64,000 nucleotides of DNA, from the NCBI GenBank assembly GCA_004764695.1, contig SMSO01000031.1, positions 1,402,436 through 1,466,435 of the forward strand, in the 5' to 3' direction. The notes below the pieces were generated by a model. The model searched no databases, had not been told where the DNA came from, and was given only the letters and a program-made list of their open reading frames with translations. A program made the position numbers and the translations under genes. This stretch comes from Schizochytrium sp. TIO01. Taxonomy: Eukaryota; Protista; Bigyra: Labyrinthulomycetes. Positions 29,688-57,742 of the stretch are shown here, one piece after another (the stretch's first letter is position 1; each line of letters begins with the position of its first letter).

Positions 29688-32600
29688 ATGAAGCCACTGT
29701 TCGAACTTGATGAAAGCTGCCATGGCCATGGTCCTGTCCAGGCCTGCTGGCAGCACGATGGAAGCTACCTTGCATCCTGTGGCCTCAATGGCCTCGTGCA
29801 AGTCTATGATCGCCACGGAGAGCAGTACGATGAGATCCGCCTTCCGAGCAAAACTCGTGTACTTAGCATGGACTGGGACAAAGATGGTGAGCTTCTGGCC
29901 GTTCTTCAGGAAAAGGCTCAATCCGTGATGCTTTATAGTCTGCAAAAAAAGCAAATGAGTGCTCTGGAAGCAAATTTGAAGAATCCACAATTTCTTGCCT
30001 GGTCCAAAGTTGGCCCTCAATTGGCCATTGGTGCTGGCAATGGATCCGTTGTGCTATATAGAAAAGACAACCTTCGTCAAGAGGTGCTTTTTGGGAAACA
30101 CTCTGGTTCGATTGTCTGTGGCGCCTGGGGTGACGAAGAGAACCTATTGGCATTGGCTGGCGAGGACAGAACAATCACGATATCCACATGCGAGGGCACA
30201 ACAGAGGCCCAATTTACAGTCTCAGGTATACCAGGTCGGATTGCGTTTGCTCCTCCGAGGACTGCGCGCAGCTTAGAAGGAAAGGGTGAAGATTCAAAGG
30301 CGTGGACCCTTTGCACATCAGTGAAAAGTGAAGACATCATTCTTTATGCGATGCATGAAGAGCCAACACGACTTCCATTTGCTCAGAGATATGGTAAGAT
30401 TGTGGCTTTCGAATGGCTTTCGAACCATATTCTGATCGTTGGATTCACAACAGGACAGCTTGTTGCTGTTCGTTTGGATGAAGGTCATTTTGGTGAGGAA
30501 GTATTTTCTTCAAGGCTACACCGCACTTCCTTAACGAATCTTGTTGTATCGCGCTCTTATCAGCGAGTCGCCTCCTGTGGAGATAGCTCTGTGCACATCG
30601 TAGATACTCAGTCATGGCGGGAGAATACGGAAGACATTATCAACCTTGAAAACGAAGAAGGTAATCTTGCCAAAATGTGCTGGACATCAGATGGCCAAAT
30701 TCTTACCGTAGCTACTAAGACAGGTCGATTGTACAATTTCCTGACCAAAATGCCAATGTTTAATGATAGCTATGGTGTAAACGTAGCATACCTATCATCA
30801 TTGCGTGAAATTGCGATCATTGACGCTCTTGATGCTCAGCGCGGAGTCAGAAGTAGCCCTATCCGTGTCCCAGTAAACATTGAGCCAGGGTTTGTTGGGC
30901 TTGGTGCGGATCATGTTGTTGTAGGAATGAATAACCGGGCGTGGTTCTATCGCTTTCAAGAAAATGAAGATCCCAGTCAAACTGACCAACTTGTCAACGA
31001 GATGGAGTATCTTGGAAGCGTGGAGACAATTGCTCTGAATGAGCAATTTTGTGCAGCGCTATGCGGCGGGAAAATTTACCTACACCCCATTGAAGCGTCT
31101 CAAGAAGGTGGAAATCAAGTTTTCCCTCCACCTGAGTGTGGCGAAGCCACTAGCGTTGCATTGACATCCAATTTTATCATTTTTGCGTCTACAGATGGCA
31201 CGTTACAGTTTTATTCTCTCTTTGATGGAAGTCCGATCGCCACATCTGAGCTCAGACATGGACATACCATTCGTGCAATTTACCCGAATTCTTCAGGAAC
31301 GCGGGTAATTTTTATCGATGAAACTGGAGCAGGTTTTCTATACAACCCAGTTGATGCCCAGATTTGTGAAGTGCCTGACCTGAATGCAGATACAAACAAA
31401 GTAATTTGGGATGGTCTTGATCCATTCATTTTTGTCACTGCTAACCCCTATGAGCTCAGCACATATGTGTACACCCCACTGACTATCAATGGCCCAGAGG
31501 TAACGAAAGTTGGGCCACTAGATGTAAAGGAAAACGGCCAGACTGAGATGCACGCCTTATCCACTCAGCTTCCCTCGGGTTTCCAAGCAATTACCTCTTT
31601 TGCAGGTATTGTGACCTGCCAAGCTCCTAATTCCCAGCTCAATCGAGTCATGCTTGGATCTCACGAAGCCTTGCATAGTCTCGATCGCAGCAGTGAGACA
31701 AATCGAATGAAATTCGACCAGAGCCTCGCATTACACAAGCTGCAGGATGCCTGGCACATGGCTCTCATGCTTGAATCCAGGCCGCACTGGACGGCCTTGT
31801 CTCTGCGAGCAATGGCAGAGATGAACATTGACCTTTCCATTCGAGTGTTCCGCCAGCTCAGAGATGCAGGCATGGTAATTGCGTTAGAACACTTGAGGTA
31901 TGTAGAGGACAAACATTTGCTTGCAGGGCATATTGCAGCTCTCTTTTCTGATTATGCGCAGGCTCAGGAGCTTTACTTGTTGTCTTCGGCTCCAGAGACA
32001 GCATTAACACTTCATAAGGATTTGATGAATTGGGAACAGGCCCTCAAAATAGCAGAAAGCGTTGCACCGCAGGAAATTCCTCTTCTTTCGGTCCAATATG
32101 CAAAGCAGCTTGAGTTCAAGGGTGAATATCGACAAGCCCTTCAGGTTTATGAGAAAGCATTCGAGACACTTGGTCCTCAATGCGTGGAGGAGAAAAGTAC
32201 AAATTTCTACAACGATCCTACTCTTGACGGTCAAGAGCCACAGGTAGACCTTGAAGCGGAACGCAACCTGTGCCTGGCAGGTATTGCACGAATGACTCTT
32301 CGTGCTGGCAATATCCCAAAAGGTGTGCGACTTGCTATGGACTTGAAGGATAATATTGTTTGTCGTGAATGCGCTGATATTTTGCTTACGATGAAGCAAC
32401 TCCCTGATGCAGCTATGCTCTTTGAACAGGCTGGGGAGTTTGAAGAAGCGGCAAGCGTCTATATCAGAACCAAGAATTACTCCGCTGCACAACCACTCCT
32501 GGACAAGGTCACAGCCCCAAAGCTTCACAGAGAGTTTGCTCGCGCAAAGGAAGCCGAAAAGGACTATCGTACCGCTTTGGAAGAGTACGAAAAGGGCGAA

Positions 32601-33986
32601 GATGGAGATAATGTCATTCGTATTGCTCTTGAGCACTTACGTCAGCCTGAAAAGGCATTTGCCCTGGTTCGTTCAACTCAAACCTCAACCGGTGCAGACT
32701 TAGCAGCACGATACTGCCAAAGTGTAAGCGACTTTCAAGGTGCTATTGAATTCATGCTCATGGCAAAACGTGTTGACGATGCCTTCGAATTAGCGACGAC
32801 TCATGATACCATGGAGGTCTTTGAAACCGCTCTAGGAGGCGATGGAACACCCGAGCAGTATCAAAACATTGCCAAGTACTACGAGACAAAGCAGCAGCAT
32901 AGTAAAGCAGCAGAGTTTTATGCACTCTGTGGACAATACAGAGTGGCTCTCGCTTTGTATCAGAAATGTAACGAAATTGAACGCGCTATTGAAGTAGTTG
33001 GCCGTGCAAAAGATGACATGCTGACACATCGTCTTATTGATTACCTCATGGGAGACTCAACGGGCATTGTACAAGAGCCTATTCACATTTTTAGATTGTA
33101 TATGGCGTTGGGCAATTACATTCAGGCGGCCCGAACTGCCATGGTTATTGCGCATCAGGAATGTGAGAATGGAAACTACAAGGCTGCACATAGTGTCTTG
33201 TACGAAACGTACCATGAGCTAGAGGCTCGTAGTATTCGGATTCCCCAACAGTTACGCTCAACATTTATTCTACTTCATAGTTACTTACTTGTGAAGAAGC
33301 GCATCAAGGTTGGTGACCATTCCGGCGCAGCTCGTCTTCTTGTTCGAGTGGTGAAGAATATATCCAGCTTCCCTTCTCATACCGTGCCCATTCTTACCAG
33401 CGCTGTTATTGAGTGCCACCGTGCGGGCTTGAAGAAAACCGCTTTTGAATACGCTTCTCAGCTTATGAGCTCTGAGTACCGTGCGCAACTCGACCCTAAT
33501 TATCGCACTCGCATCGAGACCATCGTGCGGCGTCGGGGTCGCTCTGAGCTTGCTGACACAGATGAGGGGCGCTCTGAGTGTCCGTACACTACAGAGATGA
33601 TTCCTAACTTTGAGCTCATTTGCCCCCGCACGAAGAATCAGATTCCATTTTGCGTTGTGACTGGCCGACACATGGTTCTCGATGATTGGTGCATATGCCC
33701 AGTCTCGAAAATGCCTGCCCTGTATTCAGAGTATGTCAAATACTTACAGGATGTGAAAACTTCAGAGGAGCGACTTGATCCGGTCTGTGGCCAACCAATA
33801 AGTATTGGAGAATTGCGAAAGCTCGAGAATCCCAAACCTTACCTTGACATTTACTCCTCGTCAGGGGCTGATGATGAAGACGAAGATGACGAAGATGATG
33901 ATGACCGGGAGGATGGCGGCGATTTGGAAGTACGAATCAGCAAGGGTACTCACGGAAGCAGGAACAGCGAGGATAATGAGGAATGA
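29688..33986 (+). CDS. WDR19: Intraflagellar transport protein IFT144/WDR19 (IFT-A)
   Basis: 1432 aa; N-terminal WD40 (MDWDKDGELLAV, WSKVGPQLAIG, GKHSGSIVCGAW), TPR-like region, C-terminal LLHSYLLVK...ARLLVRV...FPSHTVPILTSAVIECHRAGLK...IPFCVVTGRHM zinc-ribbon region. Confidence 0.96.
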   Translation: MKPLFELDESCHGHGPVQACWQHDGSYLASCGLNGLVQVYDRHGEQYDEIRLPSKTRVLSMDWDKDGELLAVLQEKAQSVMLYSLQKKQMSALEANLKNPQFLAWSKVGPQLAIGAGNGSVVLYRKDNLRQEVLFGKHSGSIVCGAWGDEENLLALAGEDRTITISTCEGTTEAQFTVSGIPGRIAFAPPRTARSLEGKGEDSKAWTLCTSVKSEDIILYAMHEEPTRLPFAQRYGKIVAFEWLSNHILIVGFTTGQLVAVRLDEGHFGEEVFSSRLHRTSLTNLVVSRSYQRVASCGDSSVHIVDTQSWRENTEDIINLENEEGNLAKMCWTSDGQILTVATKTGRLYNFLTKMPMFNDSYGVNVAYLSSLREIAIIDALDAQRGVRSSPIRVPVNIEPGFVGLGADHVVVGMNNRAWFYRFQENEDPSQTDQLVNEMEYLGSVETIALNEQFCAALCGGKIYLHPIEASQEGGNQVFPPPECGEATSVALTSNFIIFASTDGTLQFYSLFDGSPIATSELRHGHTIRAIYPNSSGTRVIFIDETGAGFLYNPVDAQICEVPDLNADTNKVIWDGLDPFIFVTANPYELSTYVYTPLTINGPEVTKVGPLDVKENGQTEMHALSTQLPSGFQAITSFAGIVTCQAPNSQLNRVMLGSHEALHSLDRSSETNRMKFDQSLALHKLQDAWHMALMLESRPHWTALSLRAMAEMNIDLSIRVFRQLRDAGMVIALEHLRYVEDKHLLAGHIAALFSDYAQAQELYLLSSAPETALTLHKDLMNWEQALKIAESVAPQEIPLLSVQYAKQLEFKGEYRQALQVYEKAFETLGPQCVEEKSTNFYNDPTLDGQEPQVDLEAERNLCLAGIARMTLRAGNIPKGVRLAMDLKDNIVCRECADILLTMKQLPDAAMLFEQAGEFEEAASVYIRTKNYSAAQPLLDKVTAPKLHREFARAKEAEKDYRTALEEYEKGEDGDNVIRIALEHLRQPEKAFALVRSTQTSTGADLAARYCQSVSDFQGAIEFMLMAKRVDDAFELATTHDTMEVFETALGGDGTPEQYQNIAKYYETKQQHSKAAEFYALCGQYRVALALYQKCNEIERAIEVVGRAKDDMLTHRLIDYLMGDSTGIVQEPIHIFRLYMALGNYIQAARTAMVIAHQECENGNYKAAHSVLYETYHELEARSIRIPQQLRSTFILLHSYLLVKKRIKVGDHSGAARLLVRVVKNISSFPSHTVPILTSAVIECHRAGLKKTAFEYASQLMSSEYRAQLDPNYRTRIETIVRRRGRSELADTDEGRSECPYTTEMIPNFELICPRTKNQIPFCVVTGRHMVLDDWCICPVSKMPALYSEYVKYLQDVKTSEERLDPVCGQPISIGELRKLENPKPYLDIYSSSGADDEDEDDEDDDDREDGGDLEVRISKGTHGSRNSEDNEE

Positions 33987-34498: not shown

Positions 34499-35911
34499 TT
34501 AGGCCTGGTCCTTGGGAGCTGCTGGGGGCTCCTCTGCAGACTTTTTCTGCTGCTGAGCCTGGAGAACTGCCTCACCAGCAGCGATGCGATCTGCCTTTGC
34601 ATTGCCTGGCCTCCGCTTGACCTTGAGGGAACGCATGTCAAGCTGCCGTGTAACGTCCTCGAGCGACGCATTTCCGCACGTGCACGCGGCAAAGAGGAAG
34701 TATGCGAGGTCTGCGACCTCGCGGGCAACATGCTCTGGGTCATTCTCCTCAATAGCCTCAATTACCTCTTGTGCCTCCTCAATGAGCTTGTTACGCAGCA
34801 ATGCCTTGTCCTCAAAAAGACGTTTTGTGTATGATCCTTCTGGGGCGTTAAGCTTGCGGGACTCAAGAGTGCGAAAGAGGTGGGGGATGCCACCGTCATA
34901 ACCCCAGCATGTGCGGGTCTGTTGATGGCAAAATGCAGGAGGGTTTCCACGCTGGCGCACCTTGAACCTCATCGCGTCGGCATCACAGTCAAATGCGATA
35001 GACACAAGCTCCTGAAAGGCACCGCTTGTGTCGCCCTTGCGCCACAGACTCTGCCTGGATCTTGACCAGTACACGCCGCGGCCACACGCCAACGAGGCAA
35101 CCACAGACTGTTCGCTGGAGTACACGAGGCCAAGTGCCACGCCATTCTCATCGGTGACGACCGTCGCAAAGAGACCATCTGTACGGTCGGTGCGAAGGCA
35201 CGCTACAAAAGACCTTGCCACGCAAAAGGCAGCCTCTGAGTCAGTATCTGTCGCAAGAGACCCTTCTGTTGGCATGGAAACGTTCTTAGACACAACGTTC
35301 ACAGGAAAGTCTGTGGAGTGGAGTCCATGGAGCTTACCAACGAGCTGGTTGTTAATCTTCTGCGCCTCGCCTCCGGCCTCGATCTCGGGGACCTCTAATG
35401 TGATAGCAAGGCGTTTTCCCAAAAGCTGCCATGCCCTCTCTGCGACCTTGACGACTTCTTCAGAATTTTTGGCCTCAGAAATAATTGAAACGCCCCCAAC
35501 GCTGCCAGAAAGTTTGCTCAGGAGACCGTCGTCTTCAAGGGCCTTCTCGGAAAATCTGGCAACAAGACGTTCACGAGGAAGCTGCGAAGCAATGTCCTCG
35601 AGGTCGTCGAAAGAACCCTCAACAATGACTTGGACAGCGCCTTCGTTGAGCCATTGCGTCACTTCCTCAACGCTTGTAGCGGCGATGGGACCAACTTGGC
35701 AAGGGTACGAACACAAAGCTTTGCCCCACTTGCGAACAGCAGATTTCCAGAAGTCCTTCTCCTCAGGGGCACCCACACTTGGTGCGGAGACAGAGTCAAG
35801 TGAAGGGATGATGCGAAGGGGGCCGCACCAACTCAGGCGTTTGAGGAGATCAAACTTCTCAGAGGACGCCACAGCACCGCCCACGGCCACGTCCACAGCG
35901 GGAATGAGCAT
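34499..35911 (-). CDS. hisIE: Histidine biosynthesis protein: degenerate HisA-like N-terminus + phosphoribosyl-AMP cyclohydrolase (HisI) + phosphoribosyl-ATP pyrophosphatase (HisE)
   Basis: MLIPAVDV..G start and WLNEGAVQVIV (HisA-like); GVYWSRSRQSLWRKGDTSG, DCDADAM, FCHQQTRTCW (HisI); GSYTKRLF, KLIEEAQE, EVADLAYF (HisE); no HisD. First ATG 35911. Confidence 0.92.
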   Translation of the reverse strand: MLIPAVDVAVGGAVASSEKFDLLKRLSWCGPLRIIPSLDSVSAPSVGAPEEKDFWKSAVRKWGKALCSYPCQVGPIAATSVEEVTQWLNEGAVQVIVEGSFDDLEDIASQLPRERLVARFSEKALEDDGLLSKLSGSVGGVSIISEAKNSEEVVKVAERAWQLLGKRLAITLEVPEIEAGGEAQKINNQLVGKLHGLHSTDFPVNVVSKNVSMPTEGSLATDTDSEAAFCVARSFVACLRTDRTDGLFATVVTDENGVALGLVYSSEQSVVASLACGRGVYWSRSRQSLWRKGDTSGAFQELVSIAFDCDADAMRFKVRQRGNPPAFCHQQTRTCWGYDGGIPHLFRTLESRKLNAPEGSYTKRLFEDKALLRNKLIEEAQEVIEAIEENDPEHVAREVADLAYFLFAACTCGNASLEDVTRQLDMRSLKVKRRPGNAKADRIAAGEAVLQAQQQKKSAEEPPAAPKDQA

Positions 35912-36659
35912 GATGCCAAGTCTTCTGCTGGTTGCAACGCAACTGCTTTGGCTGGTGCTAAAGCTCCTGTTATTACAGACTGACTGAAGTTGTGCGAGAC
36001 CGCCTCGCGAAGATGCTGGAAGACTGCGATAGAGCAATGCAGGTTTACTCGCAAAGGTCTTGCTCTGATTGACTTGCTACTTATAACTGTAGTGTTACGA
36101 GTAGAAAGGTGAAGTTTTACTCTATTTGTACAGCAGCCATAAGAGCTTTTGCTTTTGTTCTATTGACGCAGGAGTGGCTTTAGTGGGAACAGAGACCTAC
36201 GTCTACGTAGGGATAAGCGCCTTCGAGGCAGAATTGTTGCGATCGTTGTCTGTCGCAGGCCTTCATTTCGTAAAGACCAAGCTCAAAAAATATGTCTCAC
36301 CACACAAGCGCTGTAGCACATGGAGAGCAAACTTGGTGGTCCTCATAGGTGGAGCAGACCTACTCATACCCACTCATAGGTGGAGCAAACCCACACACTA
36401 CAGCAGTCAGCTCTCAGAAGCAGCACTTGCAACCGACGCTGACTTGGTGTCTAAGCCGACAGTTGCATCCCTGAGCTCGGCAGAGAAAGCTGTGACCATG
36501 GTGTAGTTGGCAAGGACCTTCATTTGTAATCAGAAAACGAGCCAAAATTAGGGTCTTATCTCATGCTGGAAAAGGGCCACTTGCTGAACAAAAGCGACTA
36601 CGGTGCCGGTAACTAGCTCTTATTATAGAGAATAGCAAGCTCTTTGCGATGAAGGGGAT

Positions 36660-40905: not shown

Positions 40906-41049
40906 GTAAGTTTGTAAAATAGTAAGTAAGTAAAATAGTAAGTATGTAAAATAGTAAGTAAGTAAAATAGTAAGTGTGTAAAATAGTAAGTGTGTAAAAT
41001 AGTAAGTTTGTAAAATAGTAAGTGAGTAAAATAGTAAGTATGTAAAATA
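40906..41049. repeat. 16-bp minisatellite GTAAGTnnGTAAAATA x9
   Basis: Nine head-to-tail units differing only at positions 7-8 (TT, AA, AT, AA, GT, GT, TT, GA, AT). Confidence 0.95.
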
Positions 41050-42843
41050 GCAACTAAGATACTTTAACATCACTTTTTCTAATTTAGCTAGTGGAGGTGA
41101 TCCTATTTTGAAGCAGCGGTCTTCCTGAAGTTTACATTCTTATTGCTCCCGGTTTGGGTATTGTATTTAACCAACTGTCTAACTAACCAATTAATTGACT
41201 AACTAACTAACTGATCAACCAACTAAGAAACTAAGAATCTGCGCCCCCCCTCGATAAGGTGAAAGATTAAATAAACACTAAAACGTTAAATTACAAACTT
41301 TGTTGCTTAAATAATTTGTTCTACTTATTCTCATAGAGCTACTCTGAAATTCATTCAAGATTTAGACGTCCTCAACTCAGTGCATGCGCAAGAATGAGAA
41401 TGCTTACTCCTTGTCTCACTTCTTATAGGTTGTTCACTGTCCATTTACCGTAGCAGGAACAAACAAATACTGAAACCTGCAAGTGGGGCGCTTCAAACTG
41501 TGGCGCCCGACCCGATTGTTAGAATAAGAATATAATTAGATTAAAATCTGATCTCTTCCGAGCTGAAGTTTTAAGCACTCACAAATCTTACATCGAGAAA
41601 TGCTCGACACTGATTCAACAACACAAGCTCGAGCAAGATTTCGCGGAATCCTGAGTTTCTAAAAGTTGGAATAGGCTGTGCTTCGGAGCTTTCTTGCACT
41701 TTTCTCTTGCCCAGACGTTGAGCGTTGCTTTGCGATGATCGACCACTATGTTGCCAAAAAAGCTGAGGTCTTGCGCGAACTCAAAAATGTTCTTACTGAC
41801 CGCCTCGAAACCAGCGATATCTCTCGTTTTCAACCAGGCTCAACAATCCCCATGTGTGCAAGGGCCATTTCTACACATCAGCTATCCACAGACAATCTCT
41901 AAAAGAATTTTGAGGCTGCTAGAAATAGTACAATTGACCCTTTCGACAAGAGGTATACGCAAAGGAGGCGTTCTGCTTCGAAACCTATTGGTTCAAGTTG
42001 TCTTTAACCAGTCCCCTGGGTAGTACTGAGTGCATATCTTTTACTTTCCTACGATCCAAAAGTACTTATTTTTTGATTTGATTTTCAAAGTTATTTGATT
42101 CTCAAGTTTTAATTTAAAAGGGAACAAATTAATAAATTTTACTAGTATACCTAGCTAGAACGGTGGATCTAGATCTTCGTAGCATTCTCAAGCAACTTCA
42201 GTAGGTAGTGCTGTCTAAAACGTAAACTATTCAGAACATACACTGCTCTACATGCAAGCAGTAAGAGGATGAGGGAAGAACTGTGCTTCAGAAAGCATTT
42301 ATATAACTCCTTCTTCAACTTTAAATTGGTGATTGATTTCATGGTTAAGACTGAATGACGAGAAACCAATAAATTCCTTTACCAGAAAATTAATTAAAGG
42401 AATACCTAGAAAAAGGTTGCATTGAACTATTGGAATAGTTTTTTTTATACTAAGAAAGTCAGTACGTAATGCATAGTCAGTCAGTACTGCTTAGTTTATT
42501 ATACATTACATTCGCGTACCCCTCTGGTATACTGTGCATCTGTCAGAGTAGCCAGGGCAAAGCGAGCGATCTTCATAATAGTAGGACAGTCGCGAAATCG
42601 AAACGGCACGCTTCTTAAAAAGGACCAAGAGTATATATATTTATAATATATACTATCTTATGTACTCTGCAATTTTTTTTAATTTTTTTTTAATTAAATA
42701 AAAGATTTATTAAAATGGAACGAAGTCAGGTGGCTCTGGTCGATTGCAGCATGCAAGATAATTTGGTGTGGCAAAGTCAAAATACAATTAACTTGAAGGC
42801 GGTAGTATACGGGGTCATACACTATATACACGTCACTGATGTC

Positions 42844-45201
42844 ATGAGCTCGAATCGCAAATCCGAAGTACTTTCCGAGGACGAAAACCGAGACGAGAAG
42901 AAGGATGTTGCCAAGATCGTTGTTCTGACAGCTGTGTGGTGGATAGGAAGCTCTGTATTTTCAGCATCGTCGAAAAATGCTCTTTTAGCGACAGATCTTG
43001 AGTATGTGCCAATTATTGTTGGTGTCTCGTTTGTCACATTCATCCAGCTCTTTATTGCAGCAATGCTTTCGCTTGCATTCCTCGCTGCCAAAGGCCAAGT
43101 GGAGAAGTGTTTCAACATCTTACGCCCATGCATAAAAATCGGAGTACTTCATGGTATTGGAAACCAAGCAACCAATTTCTTGGTTGTAACTGCCGGTGTC
43201 AGCGGGGCTCTTACATACAAGGCTGCCGAGCCTCTCTTTGTCATGCTTGTTCTCCGTGTTCTCGCGCCCCAACGCTTCAGTCAGGAAGCCACCACCTTGG
43301 GGCTTTCTTTCATGGGCTTAGTCTGTATCGGAGTTGCGATTGCAAGTTACCACCCGCCCTTTGTGTATACGGTATTGCTCGCTGCAGCCGCTTGCAATCT
43401 CATGTTTGGTGCGCGAACTGTGTACATCAAGGAACTTCGTTCTTCTCAACAAAACGAAGGAATGTACAGTATGATTAATATTTTTTTCATGACGTGTATC
43501 ATCGGGTGCCTCGTAACGGGTGTATTTTCGTTTATGGTCTTTATTGCTTTAGATTCTGGTGCACAAATGGCTGCTGTTTCTGCAGCATGCTCGAAATCTG
43601 CACTGGTCTCTTCACTCTTCTACTTTGTGTACAATTTGGTATCGTTTCTTGCACTCGATTTAGTATCAACACCTACGCATACACTTCTAAAATCAGGAAA
43701 AGGTCTAACGGTATTGGTAATGGCAGGATTTTTCCTCAAGGAAGAGTACAGCGTTCTACAGTGGTTCGGCCTTTATGTCGCAATGCTCGGCGTGACGCTT
43801 TTTTCCCATTCAAAGAGTACGAGTTCCACAGAGATAGGTGCATATGTGCGCGAAGCTGGTTTTCGAGTTCTCGCGCTTTCGCTTACTACAGTTACTTTTT
43901 TTGCAGTATCACGATTTCTTGACCAGGCGGACATGAGTACAATCACAGGGATGGATGCCTCCACCGTCTATGTAGAACCAGAGAGTTCTTTGTTGAGTCC
44001 GGGTGGTGTCGACAATATGGCAGGGAAGCAATACAAGCCCGAGTCAAGCTACTTGACTCCTTATGAACGTCGAGGTGACGCAGCAGCCTGGTTAACATGT
44101 CTGGGAGCAATCCAAGAGTTGCAATACGATTTACTCGAGGACATTTTCCAGATCAAAGAGGTTCGGGACAACCGCGTTCTCTACCTCGACCCAGCGCACC
44201 ACACGAATTTTGGTGACAATGCCCTGGCCGAAGGAGTACACCAGTTTCTGGGCCGTATGGGGTACGGATCTAGCACGACAACACAGTGCCGCTTGCATCA
44301 AGCTTCCAATGTCCTTCCTAATTGTAAAGAAGTCAATTTGGACAATCATTTTCTTGCGGTATGGCACCCTGGAGGAAATTTTGGCGACTTATGGTACACT
44401 AACCAAGTCAAAAGAATAGAGAGCTTTGAGTACCTTCTAGCTCGCAATATGACTGTGGTAAGCTTTCCCCAAAGCTACGAATATGGAAACAAGGAAACTG
44501 AAAAGAGCGATGCTTTGAAACTACAGGGATACATCGAAAAGACAGTTGGGCTGGAGAGAGCCAAGGAAAAAGTCATCCTCTTGTGGCGATCGCAACGAAG
44601 TCTAGACAAGGCATCTCAAGCATTCCCCTTCGTGCAGCACCGTCTCGTCCCTGACATGGCATTCGCTCTTCGCCCGATGTTACCTCGAAGAAAGTTTCTA
44701 GGCGGGCCGAAGGAGCAAGTGGATATTCTTTTCATCTGGCGCACTGACAAAGAAGGCCTCAATAGGAAGCAACGAAACTCTAATTGGGTAAACGATGCGC
44801 TCAGCACTATGGAAGGTGGAGAGTCGATAACATTTAAGATCGTAGACTGGCCTGATACTAATAAGTTCGCTCCTGCGAGTGGAAGCGGCCATATCAAAAA
44901 TGCGTGCGACAAGGATTTTGAACGAACATTTTCATCTAACCAAGCTTTGATCTCGCATGGCAAAGTCGTAATTTCGGACCGATTGCATGGTACTATCGTG
45001 TCCTTGCTGCATCGGATTCCTCATATTGCGCTGGAAAATACATATGGCAAGGTACGAGCAACACGTGACGCTGCCTTTGCTGCGCATGAAGCATGTCGTG
45101 ACGATGATGCAATGAACTATCGTTACACGGATGACATGTTAGAGGCCATGAGGCTTGCAATACATTTCCTTAAGTACAACGAATTCCCAGCAGTTGTTTA
45201 G
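42844..45201 (+). CDS. Fusion protein: TPT/SLC35E (phosphate/PEP translocator-like) domain + polysaccharide pyruvyltransferase
   Basis: N-half multi-TM with LHGIGNQATN, ALTYKAAEPLF, CNLMFGARTVYIK, YNLVSFLALDLVSTPTHTLLKSGK; C-half DPAHHTNFGDNAL, HPGGNFGDLW, SFPQS, VPDMAF, RTDKE, VISDRLHG..SLLHRIPHIALENTYGKV. One uninterrupted frame; likely start 42844 (in-frame ATG also at 42715). Confidence 0.9.
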   Translation: MSSNRKSEVLSEDENRDEKKDVAKIVVLTAVWWIGSSVFSASSKNALLATDLEYVPIIVGVSFVTFIQLFIAAMLSLAFLAAKGQVEKCFNILRPCIKIGVLHGIGNQATNFLVVTAGVSGALTYKAAEPLFVMLVLRVLAPQRFSQEATTLGLSFMGLVCIGVAIASYHPPFVYTVLLAAAACNLMFGARTVYIKELRSSQQNEGMYSMINIFFMTCIIGCLVTGVFSFMVFIALDSGAQMAAVSAACSKSALVSSLFYFVYNLVSFLALDLVSTPTHTLLKSGKGLTVLVMAGFFLKEEYSVLQWFGLYVAMLGVTLFSHSKSTSSTEIGAYVREAGFRVLALSLTTVTFFAVSRFLDQADMSTITGMDASTVYVEPESSLLSPGGVDNMAGKQYKPESSYLTPYERRGDAAAWLTCLGAIQELQYDLLEDIFQIKEVRDNRVLYLDPAHHTNFGDNALAEGVHQFLGRMGYGSSTTTQCRLHQASNVLPNCKEVNLDNHFLAVWHPGGNFGDLWYTNQVKRIESFEYLLARNMTVVSFPQSYEYGNKETEKSDALKLQGYIEKTVGLERAKEKVILLWRSQRSLDKASQAFPFVQHRLVPDMAFALRPMLPRRKFLGGPKEQVDILFIWRTDKEGLNRKQRNSNWVNDALSTMEGGESITFKIVDWPDTNKFAPASGSGHIKNACDKDFERTFSSNQALISHGKVVISDRLHGTIVSLLHRIPHIALENTYGKVRATRDAAFAAHEACRDDDAMNYRYTDDMLEAMRLAIHFLKYNEFPAVV

Positions 45202-45693
45202 AAAAGACAGAAACCCCCAGGCCAAATACTTTTGCAACCCTCATTATCCAGCCCGGAAAAAAGAGCTCAAACAAATTTCGATGATTTATAATAAACTTTT
45301 TTCATAAAATGTATTTCATGCGCACTGATGATTAACTGGTAGTAGTTGACTGTCGAGGCTTGCAACAAAATCTACATGCCAGACGTGTAATGCAGCATCA
45401 GTGGTAAATTGTTTCACGGTTTTGTGATGGCTTGTGAAAAACAAAATCAATATAAGAAAATACCACTACTGCAAATATGGGAGGAAGCATCAAAGTTCTC
45501 ATGATGTCTGAAGGAGTGGTGTTTTACTGCAAATATCTGGCCCGCTGGGGTGCGTGTTGGGGGGTGGGGTTGAAAGTCAAGAAGAGACACCGACGATTTG
45601 CGTGTCTTGCGCAATTCGAAATTCAAAGTTCACCATAAAGAGCATCCAGGTGCAAGATGAAGAATGACTGGGCGGAGGTTGACGTCCACATTT

Positions 45694-47865
45694 TTATTGA
45701 AGACTGCGGAGTAAGCGGCGACGCTGACGAGCTCGGGGTGAACAACTTTGATCATTGGCATGATTCTCTTCCATTTCATGGGAGAAAGGACGTTTTCTTG
45801 AAAGTCCATGCCGAGAGCACTGTCGTTCAAGCGCAGCGACTCTAGAACTTTGTTCATGACAGCAGCTAGAGCAAGCCGCGAATGCGCAGTTTTTTGCAGC
45901 TTCTCCACCTTGACAGCCATAACATTTGAACTTTATCCTGCCGTTGTGGTGGAAGCAGTCTACGAGCCTTTGCCGAAGTACAAAACACGCACGACCTAGT
46001 TCAGCAATGGAGAACCCACTTAAAGCCCCCTCGTGAGGCAAAAGTCTATCGCGATAGCTGAGCGCCAATCTTTGGCGATAGGGAGTGAGCTGGATTGTCT
46101 GAAATGCAACACACCAGAGTGATTCTCGGTAAGGCTGGTGCGCGAGGGGGCGGCTCATTATTTCGAGTTCAACTCTTTCACCAAGCTCACCTAGCTCGTT
46201 ACTTGTCAAGAGCGACCAAAATGTTTTGCCTTTTGGCAATTTATCGCCTAGGAAGATGTCGAGGTCACCTTTTTTACGAAAGTCTCCCTTGGTTTCGAGA
46301 ATCTCGTGCAAGATTGCTCCCAGACTAGATCTATGCGACGAACCATTGCATGTTCTCAAACCCTCGTTCCCTTTTGACTGGACCGGTGGTATATTTGTTT
46401 CTCGACAGATGAAAGGATGTTCAACTTCTGTCAACAGAGAGCGCGTAAGATCATCTTGAAGATCTCCAGCCCAGGCAACTGGGGACGATGTCGTTTCACC
46501 ATCTCTGTGTGCTGTAATAGGGTTGCTATCTTGTAAAAGCTCATGTTGTAAGAGATCAAACTGCGGGATCCTATGGTGATCGTCAAGCCCTTCACCATGT
46601 TTTTCATCAATTTGGTTACCAAGTACAGTGTCAAGCCCGCAACGAGGAGAGCCCAGCTCTGTGCATGGAGATACCGTGACACAGTTCGGGGTGCTTGATC
46701 GACTTGACTGCAAGCTTCGCGATGCTCCACTGCTCGTGTTGGCGCTGGAAAAGTAATGATGTTTGGTAGTAGGTGTTCCCAAACTTTCAGAAACTACTTG
46801 TTGGGCCTGAGTAGGCAGATCTTCAAGCAACCTCATAAACATTTCATTATCACTTTCTTGCGATTCTTGATTTGCATGTTCTTCAACAATGTCTTTGATA
46901 TTACTTCCGCCTTCGGTTCCAATCTGTTTGCCCAATTCTCCGGAATTCTCCTTAATAAAACTTAGAGTTTTCTCGGCTGCATACATGACAGACGAAGTCA
47001 ACACAGCGTGCTCCACTTCGTTTTGGGTTTCCAGTTCCGTCATCGAAAGTGAAGCATCAAACGTCATTGATCGTGGGCGACTAACGTGTTCTTCCTCAAG
47101 TAGAGCGTTATTTACCAGCCCTATATTCTCCTTCTCCTCATCAAGGCTAGCTTCTGATTCAGGGGAGCATGCAGGTGTTGTTCGGCTCGAAGAGTCAGGA
47201 AAAGTATTCATTGAAGTACTTGGCGAGAAAGAAGACAAATCGCGAAGAGCTTCGCGAACAGCGTCTGCTCGGCGGTACTTCTCGGCTCGAGAGTGCCGCT
47301 GCGATTGGATAACCGAGCCTGGTGCTTGATGACTTTCTTTCGCCTTGAGATCAACATAACTAGAGCCAATAACAACATCAGAGATGTTGAGTTTGTCTCT
47401 AACAACTCCATCATGAAGAGTCGCCTTGCCCCGCGTCATATCTTCTTTGCCGACTTCATGGCCGACATCGACGTCTTCGCCAACGTCTAGAGAAATTCGG
47501 ACTTTGTTGTCCATGACCTCGTCGGGTTCTGCAAGCGTGCCTTTGCCCGCGCTACATCGAGGGCTTTGACAACATCGTGAGCCCATTACCTTTTCAACGT
47601 GACTTTTTGGGCCTACAACCCGAGATTGTACGCAAGAACAACGAAAAGGTGCCTGGCTATGCTCAGAAGGCTCAAGAGAAGGGACATCCTTGTCCTCTAC
47701 ATAATCATGTGCCCCGACACCCATCCACCCAGAGGAGCAGCCAGCCTTGGATACATGCATGGCATTCATCGTGGAGTTGAGTGCCTGTCCCATAACTTTC
47801 TTAGACTCCCCTCGCTTAACCTCAATGCTCCGTTCGGTGCTCTCGTATCGATCAAACTGCACCAC
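45694..47865 (-). CDS. Hypothetical protein, mostly low-complexity, with C-terminal C-x2-C..C-x4-C-x2-CC..C-x2-H zinc finger (SHI/LRP1-like pattern)
   Basis: 723-aa ORF (true start uncertain; the track opens at GTG); KCYGCQGGEAAKNCAFAACSSCCHEQ...QCSRH then basic RKRP and RARQRRR. Confidence 0.65.
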   Translation of the reverse strand: MVQFDRYESTERSIEVKRGESKKVMGQALNSTMNAMHVSKAGCSSGWMGVGAHDYVEDKDVPSLEPSEHSQAPFRCSCVQSRVVGPKSHVEKVMGSRCCQSPRCSAGKGTLAEPDEVMDNKVRISLDVGEDVDVGHEVGKEDMTRGKATLHDGVVRDKLNISDVVIGSSYVDLKAKESHQAPGSVIQSQRHSRAEKYRRADAVREALRDLSSFSPSTSMNTFPDSSSRTTPACSPESEASLDEEKENIGLVNNALLEEEHVSRPRSMTFDASLSMTELETQNEVEHAVLTSSVMYAAEKTLSFIKENSGELGKQIGTEGGSNIKDIVEEHANQESQESDNEMFMRLLEDLPTQAQQVVSESLGTPTTKHHYFSSANTSSGASRSLQSSRSSTPNCVTVSPCTELGSPRCGLDTVLGNQIDEKHGEGLDDHHRIPQFDLLQHELLQDSNPITAHRDGETTSSPVAWAGDLQDDLTRSLLTEVEHPFICRETNIPPVQSKGNEGLRTCNGSSHRSSLGAILHEILETKGDFRKKGDLDIFLGDKLPKGKTFWSLLTSNELGELGERVELEIMSRPLAHQPYRESLWCVAFQTIQLTPYRQRLALSYRDRLLPHEGALSGFSIAELGRACFVLRQRLVDCFHHNGRIKFKCYGCQGGEAAKNCAFAACSSCCHEQSSRVAALERQCSRHGLSRKRPFSHEMEENHANDQSCSPRARQRRRLLRSLQ

Positions 47866-49049: not shown

Positions 49050-50624
49050 TTAGTTGTATGCTTCAAGAGCAGAAATGATCTTGCTCTCAAGGTTGGAGAG
49101 ATCATCGACGGGGATAAGCGGACGGTTTACCTCTGCATTAGCGAAGAGTGCACGCTCAATGTCCTTCATGAGGCCAAGGTCACGGAAGGCAGGGCTGCGA
49201 GCCACAAGAGAAACAGAAGCACCCTTCTTAGTCCAACGTCCCGAGCGGCCTATCCTGTGCACAAAATTCTCCGGGTCAGCTTCCTGCTCGCGGTTAACAG
49301 GAAGGTCGACATTAATAACTAAAGTCACATTGGGGTTGTCAATACCGCGCGAGGTGACATCAGTAGAAACGAGAGCCTTGCGCTCACCGCGCTTGAACTC
49401 ACTGAGCACAATGTCACGCTCGGCCTTATCCATGTCACCATGGATCTGACCGACCGGGAAGTTTAGCCCGCGAAGATAATCCGCGAGGCGTTGTACACGA
49501 TCTTTACGATTGCAAAAGATAACGGACTGCCCCTCGCTGAGCTGAGAGAGGTTCTCCCAGATCTCATTAATGGCCTCAAACTTCTTCTTATAGATTTCCT
49601 CTTCGTTGCGCTCATTCTCATCTCCAATATAGACAACGAAGTTGACGACTTTGTCGAGAGTGACATCCTCCTTGCGCAGCGTGATCTCGTGGTACTTGGA
49701 CTCGTCCATGTCATGTCCACCAACGAACTGGCGGGCAATCTGTCGTACATTTTCGGTGAAGGTGGCCGAAAAGAGCAAAATTTGGCACGGCTTGTCCTTG
49801 CGCTTCTTGAGAATAATGTCGCGAATCTCCTGAACGTCCTGTCCAAATCCGTGAGGTGGCTGCTGCACCATCTTGTCAGCTTCATCAAGAATAAGAACGC
49901 GGCACTCAGACGGATCGATCATAGGCTTGCGCTTCTTGCGTCCCATGGCATTTTTGAGGTAGTTCTTGACCATTCCAGGTGTTCCCACAACGACCTGCTC
50001 ATCAAAGTCTTCACCTTCACTAAGTGCCCACGGCGCCGCCGCGCTCCCTTCCGCGAGGGGTCCATTTTTGGACCTAGCAGACATAACTCTGCGTGCTTTA
50101 ATGCCCTTGTCGGATCCCAGTGCGTTGACCTCCTGTGCAATCTGCGTGCACAGCTCCTGAGTGACAGCCAAGATAATAGCCTGAGGCGTGCTGGGCTTCT
50201 TATCTGCAGAGATCCTTGCAAGCATAGAGATGACAAAGGTACCGGTCTTACCCGTGCCGGCTTGAGCCTGTCCGATAAGGTTTCGTGGAGGGTCGCTGAT
50301 CACAAGCGGAAGTCCAATTTGCTGGATCTTAGACATAGTGCTCCAGCCCTTGACGTTCGCGATAGACTTCTTGAGGTCGTCATCAATCGCAAGGGCTGAG
50401 AAACTTGTCACTGCCTGCGTCTTGGGCTCGTCCACGGGGCACCCGGCCTCGCGTACTACAAGAGCACCGCTGTGCAGGTCTGGAGCTCCGTGGACGTCGA
50501 GGTCCAACTTAGCCGCATGTTCGCTCAGAGCGGCCACAGCGTCTCCCTCCGTGTCATTTTCGACATCATCCGCCCACGACGACTTGGGCTCGGCCGGTGG
50601 TGCGGCTGCGGCAGGTTCAGACAT
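49050..50624 (-). CDS. DBP5: DEAD-box RNA helicase Dbp5/DDX19 (mRNA export)
   Basis: SWADD N-terminus, SKIQ...PPRNLIGQAQAGTGKT, GTPG, LDEADKM, LFSATF, GQSVIFC, RGID, NVDLP...ADPENFVHRIGRSGRW. Confidence 0.93.
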   Translation of the reverse strand: MSEPAAAAPPAEPKSSWADDVENDTEGDAVAALSEHAAKLDLDVHGAPDLHSGALVVREAGCPVDEPKTQAVTSFSALAIDDDLKKSIANVKGWSTMSKIQQIGLPLVISDPPRNLIGQAQAGTGKTGTFVISMLARISADKKPSTPQAIILAVTQELCTQIAQEVNALGSDKGIKARRVMSARSKNGPLAEGSAAAPWALSEGEDFDEQVVVGTPGMVKNYLKNAMGRKKRKPMIDPSECRVLILDEADKMVQQPPHGFGQDVQEIRDIILKKRKDKPCQILLFSATFTENVRQIARQFVGGHDMDESKYHEITLRKEDVTLDKVVNFVVYIGDENERNEEEIYKKKFEAINEIWENLSQLSEGQSVIFCNRKDRVQRLADYLRGLNFPVGQIHGDMDKAERDIVLSEFKRGERKALVSTDVTSRGIDNPNVTLVINVDLPVNREQEADPENFVHRIGRSGRWTKKGASVSLVARSPAFRDLGLMKDIERALFANAEVNRPLIPVDDLSNLESKIISALEAYN

Positions 50625-51797: not shown

Positions 51798-52469
51798 GTG
51801 AGTCCATTTTTATCTTGAGTGGATGGTAGCCTGTCGTAGATGACTCTTAAGAGCGGTTGTGCCAAGACCAATCGACCGCAGAAGCTAAATTTGAGCAGCT
51901 CTGCTCTCCATGAACTGAAATTTGCGGCCAGAGTTCTTGGGTGCGTCTTGATCATGGATGGGCAGGGTTAGCTCGAGCATTGTCAGACCTCCATCTACCC
52001 GAGGAATAGCTGTGGTCATTCTATGAATAAGTCCAAGGTGAAGTCCAGCCATACTATGCAATACAGTTCCAAAGATGCACAACCCTTTCCCATGTCCTCA
52101 TGATGTCTCAATATGATATGTTCTTTCCGTTCTAAAGAGAAGGACTTTAGTACAAAAGAGGCGTCCTAAATTAATTTACCAGAGTTGCTGTCGTAAATTC
52201 CCTGCCGCACGCAATTCAAAGGACTACTAGTACTACCACCTACTACGTGATACTACGAAGGTATACCTAGTTGTAGAAAAATTGCAAACTCCGAACTTGA
52301 GTTCAATCAAGTTCGGACTCGGATCGTGCTGTGCGCTTCTCCGCATCTCTACCGATCATCCATTTTGCTCTCGAGCATCTTTTGCAAAAGTCTCTTCTGT
52401 GGTTCACAGTACAGCTGGTTAGTTAGCTGGCTGCCTTTCTACAGATACATTGACATACAGACCACCACC

Positions 52470-53903
52470 ATGACGGCGCTGGGCTCCCTAACAGGTGCCA
52501 AGCGGATGCTTAGCTCTTCTGCCGGAACCGCCCTTCGCGGCGTATGGGCTCGAGGCATTGGTATCAACGGTGCCCTCGGTACAGGTAGTCTCGATAACGC
52601 TGACAGCCCTACACAGATCCACGGCGACCTCGACACCAAGCAGGCCCAGCCTGTAAAACTTGCAGCGGGCTTTGGCCACAGCGCCGTTCTTGACGACCAA
52701 GGTCGCGTTTATCTCTTTGGTCGCACCCACGATACCCGGCTTACTGTGCGTCTGGGTCGCTATGCGAAATCAAGCATGGTGATGCAGTATGTCATGCGGA
52801 TGATGGGTGTGGAGACATCTGTGGATGCGATTGAGCCAAAGGAGGTATTGAGCTACAAGGTGTACAAGGACCTTGGTGAGGACGATATTGAGCAGGACTC
52901 ACGGAAAAGGGGTCTTGAGACAAAGTTTGAGGGTTACTCGACAGAACCTATTCGGGAAGTTGTGTGTGGTGCCGGTGTGACAGCTTTCATTACGAAGGAA
53001 ACGGACACGCTTTTTGTATTTGGCGAGAATGTCTATGGACAGTGCGCGACGGGAACCACAGACTCGTACTTCTGGGACCCGAGGACTACAATTGGTCTTC
53101 CTGAAGATGATGATGCCGTGGCCAGCGTTGCGTTGGGATTCAGACACGGAGTTGTGGCTACGAAAGTGAGCGGCAAAGTCTTCGCGTGGGGCAAGGGACA
53201 GCGCGGTCAACTCGGAATCGGTCTGCGCGGTATTGACGACTTCTTCGTCATGCAAGAGGTCAGAGATCTACCTGGACCGGCCATCAAGGTTGCTGCTGGC
53301 ATGAACAGCAGCGCAGCCTTGCTCAAGGATGGTCGTGTCTTTGTGTGGGGCAAGATGCAATCTCGCCAGTTGGACGAGGCCAAAAGCAACTACGAGGACC
53401 AGGTTTCACCAAGAGAGGTCGAGTTCGGCCCTGAGGCAGGCCCGGTGCTTGACATTTGGGCAGGCCCGCAGAGTTATGTCGCTTTAGTTAAAGATTCTCA
53501 GGGCCACGGCTGCAAGCTTTACCAGTGGGGTCTCATGTCCGACAAGGAAACTTCAAGCTCCGAGGCTGTGACCAAGCAGATTGAACCATTCATGGAGGAG
53601 GGATTTTGGAAGTCCACCAACAAATACAAGGCCACAGCTCGCACAGTCCTTGACCCTGTACCTGTTTTTACCCCTTTCGAGCTTTCCGCCGAGCACAAGA
53701 CTCCTCAGCTTGAAGTTACAATTGGAACTGAGGGCATTTGCGTGGTTGGTGAGGATCTTGCTGTTCCTTATGTCTGGGACTGGAATCTACGCCCAGTGCC
53801 TCTGCAGTTACATGACCCGACCTTGGCAAGCTTTATCTCAACGCACGGGATCAAATCTATTGCCCAGGGATGGCAACATACTTTGTTCCTGAGTGCCAAG
53901 TAA
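52470..53903 (+). CDS. RCC1-repeat protein, probably mitochondrial (RCC1L/WBSCR16-like)
   Basis: RCC1 repeats AAGFGHSAVL..GRVYLFG, FGENVYGQC, ALGFRHG..GKVFAWGKGQRGQLG, AAGMNSSAALLKDGRVFVWG, AQGWQHTL; presequence-like MTALGSLTGAKRMLSS; accATG at 52470. Confidence 0.85.
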   Translation: MTALGSLTGAKRMLSSSAGTALRGVWARGIGINGALGTGSLDNADSPTQIHGDLDTKQAQPVKLAAGFGHSAVLDDQGRVYLFGRTHDTRLTVRLGRYAKSSMVMQYVMRMMGVETSVDAIEPKEVLSYKVYKDLGEDDIEQDSRKRGLETKFEGYSTEPIREVVCGAGVTAFITKETDTLFVFGENVYGQCATGTTDSYFWDPRTTIGLPEDDDAVASVALGFRHGVVATKVSGKVFAWGKGQRGQLGIGLRGIDDFFVMQEVRDLPGPAIKVAAGMNSSAALLKDGRVFVWGKMQSRQLDEAKSNYEDQVSPREVEFGPEAGPVLDIWAGPQSYVALVKDSQGHGCKLYQWGLMSDKETSSSEAVTKQIEPFMEEGFWKSTNKYKATARTVLDPVPVFTPFELSAEHKTPQLEVTIGTEGICVVGEDLAVPYVWDWNLRPVPLQLHDPTLASFISTHGIKSIAQGWQHTLFLSAK

Positions 53904-56236: not shown

Positions 56237-57742
56237 TTACCGGATGCTCATGCGGGCGAGGCCACCGTGAGAGGCAGTGGCAGCTCCAGCGGCGCGCTTG
56301 TTGCGCTTGACCGGGTTAGCTGCCTCGAAGACCTTCCAGAATCGAAGGGTCTCGTCAGCAGCAGCGGAGCAGACAGTGGTTCCGTCCGGAGACATCGCCA
56401 AGTGGAGAACGCGAGCGGAGTGGCTGCGAAGATCCTTGACACGAGCCATGGAAGGGAACTTCCAGAGACTGAGCTGGTTCTCACTGAAGCCGTGAGAAGA
56501 CAGAAGCTCCTTCTCGTGCGGGTTCCAGAGGAGGGAGCACACCTGGGATCCAGTGTCGACGCTGTTGAGGCAGGCGCCATTGGCAGCGTTCCAGATCTTA
56601 ATCGTGCGATCGGCAGTACCACCTCCGCTGGCAAGGACATTGCGCTGGTGCGGGCACCAGGCAAGAGCCTTCACAGCAGCGAGGTGGTCAGCGATCTTAA
56701 GACGCGGGGTCTGCACGGTCTGCTGGGAGCGACCGTCGCCAGAGTAACGAGCGTCCCAGAGGCACAGCAGGTTGTCGTTGCCTCCGGAGGCCAAGGTCTG
56801 GCCATCCGGGGACCATGAAAGCCCACAGACCTCCTGCACGTGACCCTCAAGAACACCGACCTTGTGGCTGGCCACGCGAACGTCGTGGTGCACAATAGTC
56901 GAGTCGCGGCTGCCACTGGAAAGGATGTGCTGGTTCCACGAGAGCGAGGACACGCGAGAGCTGTGACCGTCCATGTTGCGGAGAAGCTTGCAGGTCTCCA
57001 CATCAAAGAGCTTGGTCTCGCTGAAGTTCGTGCCCACAGCCAAGTAGCCACCGCCCTCCTGAACAAACTTAACCGAGGTGATGTAGTCATCCTCGGCATC
57101 ACACTGGCAGAGCTCCTCAATGCCGCCGGTCTCGGCGTTCCACAAGTACACCGTCTGGCCAAGGGCCACGGCGAGCATGTTGGAGGCGCCCCAGTCGACA
57201 AGGTTGAGGTAGTAGTCGTCCAAGAGGTCGGGTGCGTCGAGGATACGCTCCGGTGCCGAAGGAATGTGACGAACGGGCTTCTGAGTGCGCGCCATCTTCT
57301 CCTTGTTCTGCGTGTACAAAACCTTGAGGGAGTTTTCATATCCCTCAGGCGGTGCCGGAGCCTTCTTCTTGAAGGCCAAAACACGGGACTCACCCGCACC
57401 CATGCTGGACGCCAAAGCCTTGTTGAATTCAGCACGAGTAGGGGACTCGCACTGGTTAGAGGCGGAGCTGCTGTTCTCCTTCATGAGGTTGAAGTGAGCG
57501 TTAGCAAGGTCCATGGCGCCACGGTTGGGGATGAATCGGTCGTGCTGGGGCGTAGACTTGCCCTTGCTCGGGGTCTTGCCGGTGCGGCTACGCTTGCGGC
57601 TAGACTTGGGAGTGCGAGCGGCCAAGGCCTTGCGCTGCCACCGAGGCTCAACAGAGCTGCTCACTTCTTCGCCAAAGTTGTTGAAGCATTCGTCCAACTC
57701 AATCTGCTCCTGCACGTAGTTGTGTGCTGTACCGTAGGTCAT
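56237..57742 (-). CDS. CDC20: APC/C activator Cdc20/Fizzy
   Basis: C-box DRFIPNR, KEN, RVLAF, PERILDAPDLLDDYYLNLVDW, seven WD40 repeats, AADETLRFW, C-terminal IR tail. Confidence 0.97.
   Translation of the reverse strand: MTYGTAHNYVQEQIELDECFNNFGEEVSSSVEPRWQRKALAARTPKSSRKRSRTGKTPSKGKSTPQHDRFIPNRGAMDLANAHFNLMKENSSSASNQCESPTRAEFNKALASSMGAGESRVLAFKKKAPAPPEGYENSLKVLYTQNKEKMARTQKPVRHIPSAPERILDAPDLLDDYYLNLVDWGASNMLAVALGQTVYLWNAETGGIEELCQCDAEDDYITSVKFVQEGGGYLAVGTNFSETKLFDVETCKLLRNMDGHSSRVSSLSWNQHILSSGSRDSTIVHHDVRVASHKVGVLEGHVQEVCGLSWSPDGQTLASGGNDNLLCLWDARYSGDGRSQQTVQTPRLKIADHLAAVKALAWCPHQRNVLASGGGTADRTIKIWNAANGACLNSVDTGSQVCSLLWNPHEKELLSSHGFSENQLSLWKFPSMARVKDLRSHSARVLHLAMSPDGTTVCSAAADETLRFWKVFEAANPVKRNKRAAGAATASHGGLARMSIR

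Follow-up and report, generated by a model that had tools for sequence, protein, structure and literature searches.

Can one gene encode both an importer of phosphoenolpyruvate (PEP) and the enzyme that transfers pyruvyl groups from PEP to glycans? This question is raised by an open reading frame (ORF) of the labyrinthulomycete Schizochytrium sp. TIO01. It lies in a 64,000-nucleotide stretch of contig SMSO01000031.1 (positions 1,402,436 to 1,466,435 of the forward strand; assembly GCA_004764695.1), which was analyzed as a whole and is referred to as the window. In Schizosaccharomyces pombe, the pyruvyltransferase Pvg1p requires the separate PEP transporters Pet1p and Pet2p (PMC4872226). In contrast, transporter and enzyme are one polypeptide in the window protein, which joins a TPT-family domain to a Pvg1-type domain. 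Architecture and membrane topology are very probably as described below. For the full mechanism, in which PEP would be exchanged for inorganic phosphate (Pi) released by the fused enzyme, we estimate a probability of roughly 0.55.

A single intron-less frame joins both domains

ORF calling in the window revealed a stop-free frame of 828 amino acids on the forward strand (42715–45201). Pfam detected PF03151 (TPT) at residues 67–364 of this frame with 73.1 bits (cut-off 30) and PF04230 (PS_pyruv_trans) at residues 498–775 with 55.8 bits (cut-off 25.3; profile positions 1–278 of 280), each match spanning almost the full profile. The original prediction, made from the DNA letters, had proposed one frame without stop or intron and had expected exactly these two families; ORF, Pfam and contig data bore it out. 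The KAAEPLF, GGNFGDLW and DRLHG motifs as well as the extra helix are located precisely where it had placed them, and HTNFGD, PQS, PDMAF and NTYGK are likewise present (coordinates in Table 1).

Contigs from four public sequencing runs belonging to four studies were compared with positions 41000–46900. Three runs from three studies (X1, X4 and X6) were taken as probable RNA by guess, and the fourth (X12) is a 63-Mb DNA-like run. An X1 contig covered 42789–44952 with 0 differences, crossing the domain junction, and an X6 contig from a diverged strain covered 42800–45295 with 22 differences. The AT-rich upstream spacer (41985–42772) was uncovered by X1, X4 and X6, and X12 filled every bin. No joints within the gene were reported in the contigs of the four runs, and indels were confined to positions outside 42844–45201, the flanks carrying some. 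This pattern agrees with an unspliced mRNA that encompasses both domains, although contigs alone cannot prove a single molecule. Contigs also cross the interval 43900–44150, for which spanning transcripts had been asked for, without a joint; that they derive from RNA is a guess. In X4, the gene contig breaks at 44161–44190, where 30 bases are shared with a 1278-nt contig of depth ~1553. The break is probably due to a k-mer common with an abundant transcript and not to a splice site.

Residue numbers refer to the 785-amino acid protein starting at the in-frame ATG 42844. This start is favoured over the alternative ATG 42751 because the contig 5′ ends lie at ~42789–42800 and X12 carries a 1-base insertion after 42738, inside the upstream extension. 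Promoter-like AT-rich DNA is found immediately upstream of the gene; no such gap was found at the junction region between transporter and enzyme. A two-codon upstream ORF (ATG TCA TGA, 42839–42847) in another frame overlaps the likely start codon.

The C-terminal half is a Pvg1-type pyruvyltransferase with complete catalytic residues

An AlphaFold2 model was calculated from a 92-sequence alignment (mean predicted local distance difference test (pLDDT) score 86; predicted template modelling (pTM) score 0.62). Foldseek comparison of the model returned S. pombe Pvg1p (5ax7) as top match (E 3e-11, TM-score 0.77), the C-terminal domain being consistent with a two-lobed glycosyltransferase B (GT-B)-like fold. 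A sequence search of the PDB gave the same top two structures as Foldseek, Pvg1p (5ax7) and, for the transporter half, the triose-phosphate/phosphate translocator GsTPT (5y78). The C-terminal domain is therefore closest to Pvg1p by sequence (E 4e-14) as well as by fold.

Pvg1p residues were mapped by HMMER alignment with a chain offset of +53; D106, R217 and R337 all fell on matching residues. For Pvg1p and CsaB, roles of the mapped residues in binding the acceptor and PEP have been suggested or probed by mutation (PMC4872226; PMC10435577). The PEP-binding residues R582, R713 and H715, the loop residue R633 and the acceptor-binding D458 are all present in the window protein, and the mapped Pvg1p residues are conserved in 77–84 of ~87 homologues. 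The claim of a complete pyruvyltransferase domain therefore holds, and from its full set of catalytic residues the enzyme half looks active. Unlike these shared positions, overall identity to Pvg1p is only ~20–25%, and His168, an acceptor-specificity residue of Pvg1p, is replaced by Asn. Because of this exchange, the window enzyme may act on another acceptor than Pvg1p does.

The gene is the sole canonical PF04230 member in the 64-Mb genome. The only other match, a 1366-amino acid frame (L014:2584–6684, forward strand, corresponding to C33 ~3564583–3568683), is weak and partial (31 bits, profile positions 123–276). It contains hydrophobic segments at residues 239–568 and is not a close paralogue, since it lacks the DRLH, GGxFG and HxNxGD motifs.

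An eleventh helix would place the enzyme in the lumen

Carriers of the drug/metabolite transporter (DMT) superfamily, including the nucleotide-sugar transporters (NSTs), have ten helices with both termini on the same side, which is the cytosol for Golgi members. The model of the window protein contains ten transmembrane (TM) helices followed by a further helix (residues 328–365, pLDDT ~60) that includes the hydrophobic stretch 340–358. As ten plus one is an odd helix count, the C-terminal domain is predicted to be luminal, in agreement with the earlier proposal that an extra helix moves the enzyme to the lumen. All fusion homologues that were inspected have a hydrophobic segment immediately behind the TPT domain. 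An N-terminal hydrophobic anchor was found in 22 of 31 solo homologues, and for this reason TM11 is best read as a retained type II signal-anchor.

The tether behind TM11 resembles a Golgi stem region in composition. Pvg1p contains a C68–C373 disulfide (PMC4872226). C419 and C751 of the window protein seem to match these positions and would form a corresponding pair, which, together with the type II-like anchor, is a further likeness to Pvg1p. Helix count, conserved cysteines, type II anchors and the stem-like tether favour a luminal enzyme, short of direct proof. The original prediction went further and suggested that PEP is channelled to the protein's own active site. This is unlikely: a disordered tether of ~50 residues between the domains, along with the modest pTM of 0.62, points to proximity and not to substrate channelling.

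The transporter half resembles phosphate translocators

The best structural match of the transporter half was GsTPT (5y78; E 7e-9, TM-score 0.77, 21% identity). The Golgi NSTs CMP-sialic acid transporter (CST), SLC35B1 and Vrg4 ranked below it (~12% identity, E 2e-6 or worse). The window protein shares with these SLC35 members the superfamily fold, presumably cytosol-facing termini and, under the mechanism proposed below, the use of a by-product as counter-substrate. With a Pfam score above the gathering threshold and a 10-TM DMT fold, the domain belongs to the broad TPT family.

GsTPT2 binds phosphate through Lys204, Lys362, Arg363 and Tyr339, each of which greatly lowered exchange when mutated, and plastidic phosphate translocators operate as antiporters that exchange phosphate at a strict 1:1 ratio (10.1101/169169). 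Alignment with a chain offset of 89 shows that the window protein has retained three of these four residues, namely K126 (in the KxxEP motif shared with plant TPT and PEP/phosphate translocators (PPT)), Y263, which corresponds to Tyr339, and K286. The strict four-residue signature of plastidic translocators is thus incomplete. All three retained residues are constant across the window clade. Most other fusions aligned have all four residues (two carry Phe at the Tyr position), and so do the seven nearest solo transporters. Overall, the family resembles phosphate-ester carriers, of which the window lineage would be a variant, and PEP is the cargo we infer.

Transporter and pyruvyltransferase have been fused in many lineages

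Among 1.84 billion representatives, an exhaustive HMMER search identified 1706 relatives. Pfam detected both domains in no fewer than 11 additional clusters (50% identity), and both halves were seen by alignment in three more relatives (Hondaea P0002, P0003 and P0033). Fusions originate from Spizellomyces punctatus (XP_016605134.1), Quaeritorhiza haematococci (KAJ3079448.1), Physarum polycephalum, Ceratiomyxa fruticulosa and Stephanoeca diplocostata; in Trinity transcripts of the last three genera, the domains are arranged colinearly in the same way and TM11 is present. Among named relatives, GBG30113.1 of the thraustochytrid Hondaea fermentalgiana is the closest. In the ESM Atlas, a eukaryotic cluster of 60 members (613-amino acid representative; PF04230 in 97%, PF03151 in 93%) has Mollusca as its commonest phylum. 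For the sea hare Aplysia, pyruvylated galactose glycolipids are on record (PMC6801904). Database entries name the fusion proteins 'hypothetical' or 'sugar phosphate transporter domain-containing'.

The suggestion that such a fusion is undescribed stands, as no published description of a transporter-pyruvyltransferase fusion and no functional description of the other TPT/PS_pyruv_trans proteins was found in the literature searched. The rarity that it implied does not, given the additional clusters and the mostly molluscan Atlas group. The S. pombe Pet1/Pvg1 system is already known as a two-protein system, of which the window protein represents a fused form that has not been characterised so far.

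Domain order, TM11, tether, cysteines and catalytic residues are common to the window protein and the chytrid, amoebozoan, choanoflagellate, Hondaea and molluscan fusions. Unlike the others, Hondaea and P0003 apart, the window clade has a transporter of a different TPT subfamily ('LLKxGK') that has lost the Arg. In the transporter-domain tree it is placed among solo 'LLKxGKR' transporters with 99/98 support, away from the other fusions, and monophyly of the fusions was rejected by the approximately unbiased (AU) test (p = 2e-5). The window-clade fusion appears to have formed independently; on this evidence, transporter and enzyme came together two or more times, or else a single joining was followed by many separations. 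Either history is strong comparative evidence for functional coupling. These conclusions come from the transporter-domain tree and the AU test; the catalytic-domain tree is weak, as its outgroup consists of transporter-only rows on a long branch and many of its 'solo' rows could stem from truncated gene models.

The gene model of Hondaea GBG30113.1 merges the fusion with a 2-oxoglutarate dehydrogenase E2 (lipoyl and 2-oxoacid_dh domains) and lacks roughly TM2–TM4. Its enzyme motifs are degenerate (HTNFGD to TPDRDY, GGNFGD to GGEDAT, DRLH to DRLG). A pseudo-enzyme, an error in the gene model or a combination of the two could account for this.

A proposed PEP/Pi-cycling module and its alternatives

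The data are consistent with a secretory-pathway membrane protein, most likely of the Golgi, expressed from one unspliced gene. A 10-helix TPT-family antiporter with cytosolic ends would be followed by TM11, a floppy stem of ~50 residues and a luminal Pvg1-type enzyme. The carrier half would import PEP, which the enzyme would use to ketal-pyruvylate a luminal glycan, probably on galactose. Pyruvyl transfer would release Pi; ketal-pyruvyltransferases are assayed via phosphate release (PMC8615578). Luminal Pi would in turn serve as obligatory counter-substrate of a strict 1:1 antiporter. By fusion, stoichiometry would be fixed at 1:1, and import, use and recycling of the counter-substrate would be co-localised. 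The functional logic, import of cytosolic PEP by a TPT-family protein, corresponds to that of Pvg1p with Pet1p and Pet2p; covalent attachment to a luminal pyruvyltransferase is a Pet1/Pet2-like functional association, and an association only.

Several observations weigh against PEP/Pi antiport. Arg363 of GsTPT2 is replaced by G287 in the window protein, leaving a Lys-Gly instead of a Lys-Arg pair in TM9; Gly is also found in the two closest relatives, Hondaea and P0003. No compensating residue emerged from a scan for clade-specific basic residues in place of the Arg, which gave just H170 and R199. His185, which binds the carboxylate in GsTPT2, is Asn, and the Phe modelled there to clash with PEP (Phe263) is kept (NLMFGAR), while PPT has Asn (Asn262) at this position, a criterion based on homology models (10.1101/169169). 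The score for NCBIfam TIGR00817 (Tpt/PPT) is far below the cut-off (58.6 versus 317.9 bits). In these respects the window protein differs from plastidic translocators, as it does by the absence of a transit peptide, its predicted residence in the secretory pathway and its fusion to an enzyme. Moreover, enzyme decay next to a conserved transporter in Hondaea hints at a transporter role apart from the fused enzyme, and the RNA nature of the sequencing runs is not on record. With regard to the proposed PEP import, retention of three phosphate-binding residues speaks for, and the changes at Arg363 and His185 as well as the kept Phe263 speak against, the carrier half as importer.

The Lys-Gly pair, the Asn for His185, the kept Phe263 and the Hondaea case would also fit a genuine fusion whose transporter half, in this lineage, carries other cargo, such as UDP-galactose for the acceptor glycan or another anion, with PEP entering otherwise, e.g. 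via a TPT paralogue of the R/RR type. We consider this less likely than PEP import, though not remote. In its favour, the Pfam UAA cut-off is exceeded (30.5 versus 26.2 bits, C-terminal half only), and the genome does encode a second phosphate-translocator-like protein. This paralogue, L003 (C3:332609–333538, reverse strand), is the best TPT-family match of the genome (167 bits), has an RSAEP ... FRRV (Arg/Arg-Arg) signature, groups with the solo transporter P0167 and might represent an additional carrier for phosphate esters or PEP. Knappe et al. (2003) are said to have distinguished KV/A/G, KT and KD motif classes in which Arg-less variants mark nucleotide-sugar transporters, and Vrg4 reportedly has a GALNK motif; the Lys-Gly pair would be NST-like in this sense. 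On the other hand, a phosphate translocator and not an NST is nearest by fold and sequence (21% versus ~12% identity), and the Arg363 equivalent is kept in the seven closest solo transporters and in all other fusions aligned at the TM9 motif (chytrids, Amoebozoa, choanoflagellate-type). As the pyruvyltransferase uses no nucleotide sugars, supply of its donor best explains why the fusion recurs.

Less probable still is a transport-dead half that holds the luminal enzyme in place, either as a multi-span anchor or as a scaffold for Golgi retention. Loss of a residue whose mutation impaired GsTPT2, and a Pfam TPT score of 73 bits compared with 150–190 in several other fusions, would agree with this idea. 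However, a single helix suffices for anchoring, as in solo homologues, and the model of the 10-TM domain is complete and confident. The transporter domain is not decaying, because it is conserved as well as the enzyme half or better over deep divergence (38% identity with P0003, enzyme 38%; 50% with Hondaea, enzyme 28%) and its three phosphate-binding residues do not vary within the clade. Among the between-strain differences listed, 4 in the transporter domain (residues 12–325) are synonymous and 1 is non-synonymous, which are small numbers; the ratio of non-synonymous to synonymous polymorphism (pN/pS) of ~0.4 is weak evidence, based on 14 of 26 differences.

Chance read-through of two adjacent genes or an assembly error, compatible as it is with contigs of guessed RNA origin, is highly improbable given 2.36 kb without stop or indel in four runs from four studies despite indels in the flanks, a junction lacking a promoter-like AT-rich gap, and the same architecture with TM11 in many independent genomes and Trinity transcripts.

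PEP/Pi antiport thus remains our preferred account of the window protein. Its extension, that TPT transporters and pyruvyltransferases were fused independently several times (labyrinthulomycetes, chytrids, Amoebozoa, choanoflagellates and molluscs) into self-contained PEP/Pi-cycling modules, the Arg-less window lineage handling PEP via a modified binding site, is put forward tentatively and at somewhat less than even odds.

Features and neighbouring genes

No glycosylation gene cluster surrounds the fusion gene among its neighbours in the window. Contig coverage is continuous from 45200 to 45700, between the 3′ ends of the fusion gene and the convergent ORF, which suggests overlapping or abutting 3′ untranslated regions (UTRs).

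Table 1. Features of the fusion gene and its surroundings. Positions are those of the window, residues (aa) those of the 785-amino acid protein.
Feature	Position	Strand	Remarks
IFT144/WDR19-like	29688–33986	+	Neighbour
PRA-CH/PRA-PH histidine-biosynthesis enzyme	34499–36037	-	Neighbour
In-frame upstream extension	42715–42843	+	Probably 5′ UTR or untranscribed, non-coding; probable RNA contigs start at 42789–42800
Fusion protein coding sequence	42844–45201	+	785 aa plus stop, intron-less; open frame, two Pfam domains, probable RNA contigs without joints
TPT-family (DMT fold) domain, aa 12–325	42877–43818	+	Pfam TPT; 10 TM helices, pLDDT ~90; GsTPT (5y78) best transporter match
KAAEPLF motif	43219–43239	+	K126 = phosphate-binding Lys204 of GsTPT2
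TM9 motif LLKSGKG	43684–43704	+	K286 = Lys362; G287 in place of phosphate-binding Arg363
11th hydrophobic helix, aa 340–358	43861–43917	+	Likely former type II signal-anchor of the enzyme; hydrophobic segment in all fusions
Disordered Ser/Thr/Pro/acidic tether ('stem'), aa 359–412	43918–44079	+	pLDDT <50 for 361–405; 17–25% identity to nearest relatives
Pvg1-type ketal-pyruvyltransferase domain, aa 413–778	44080–45177	+	PF04230; 5ax7 E 4e-14 by sequence; compact alpha/beta, pLDDT ~97
Conserved Cys C419	44098–44100	+	70/74 homologues
HTNFGD	44200–44217	+	H453/N455/D458 = Pvg1 H101/N103/D106 (acceptor-binding Asp); Asp in 82/86 homologues
Conserved Cys C482	44287–44289	+	80/89 homologues
Conserved Cys C494	44323–44325	+	82/88 homologues
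GGNFGDLW motif	44371–44394	+	Motif location
R582	44587–44589	+	= Pvg1 R217 (PEP binding); Arg in 82/87
R633 in WRTDKEG	44740–44742	+	= Pvg1 loop R266 / CsaB R207, via +53 offset
DRLHG	44977–44991	+	R713/H715 = Pvg1 R337/H339 (PEP binding); Arg 84/87, His 77/87
Conserved Cys C751	45094–45096	+	76/77 homologues
Convergent ORF, 722 aa	45694–47865	-	No Pfam match; covered by the same probable RNA contigs
DEAD-box helicase	49050–50624	-	Neighbour
RCC1-repeat protein	52326–53903	+	Neighbour
CDC20/Fizzy	56237–57742	-	Neighbour

Implications for eukaryotic glycan pyruvylation

Knowledge of the Golgi PEP importer is limited to genetic work in S. pombe, and no NST is known to carry its transferase as a fused domain. 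A review from 2019 describes information on eukaryotic glycan pyruvylation as scarce, its table of eukaryotes comprising fission yeast, red and green algae, a sponge and a sea hare (PMC6801904). The original prediction extended to pyruvylated wall or exopolysaccharide (EPS) glycans of thraustochytrids, for which no paper was found in the literature searched. Recurrence of the fusion by independent evolution provides strong 'Rosetta-stone' evidence for PEP supply by this transporter subfamily, and PEP import and pyruvylation can be studied together through a single gene. The replacement of Arg by Gly in the window lineage amounts to a natural experiment that bears on how members of the TPT/NST superfamily recognise their substrates. 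A single-gene module conferring a sialic-acid-like negative charge on glycans could be of use in engineering. If the proposed mechanism is true, the window protein would exemplify, in nature, the covalent linkage of a Golgi donor importer to its transferase. The fusion can serve as a marker in sequence data from which pyruvylated glycans may be predicted for many lineages of protists, fungi and molluscs, and, if it has indeed arisen repeatedly and independently, ketal-pyruvylated glycans would be far commoner in eukaryotes than the few recorded cases.

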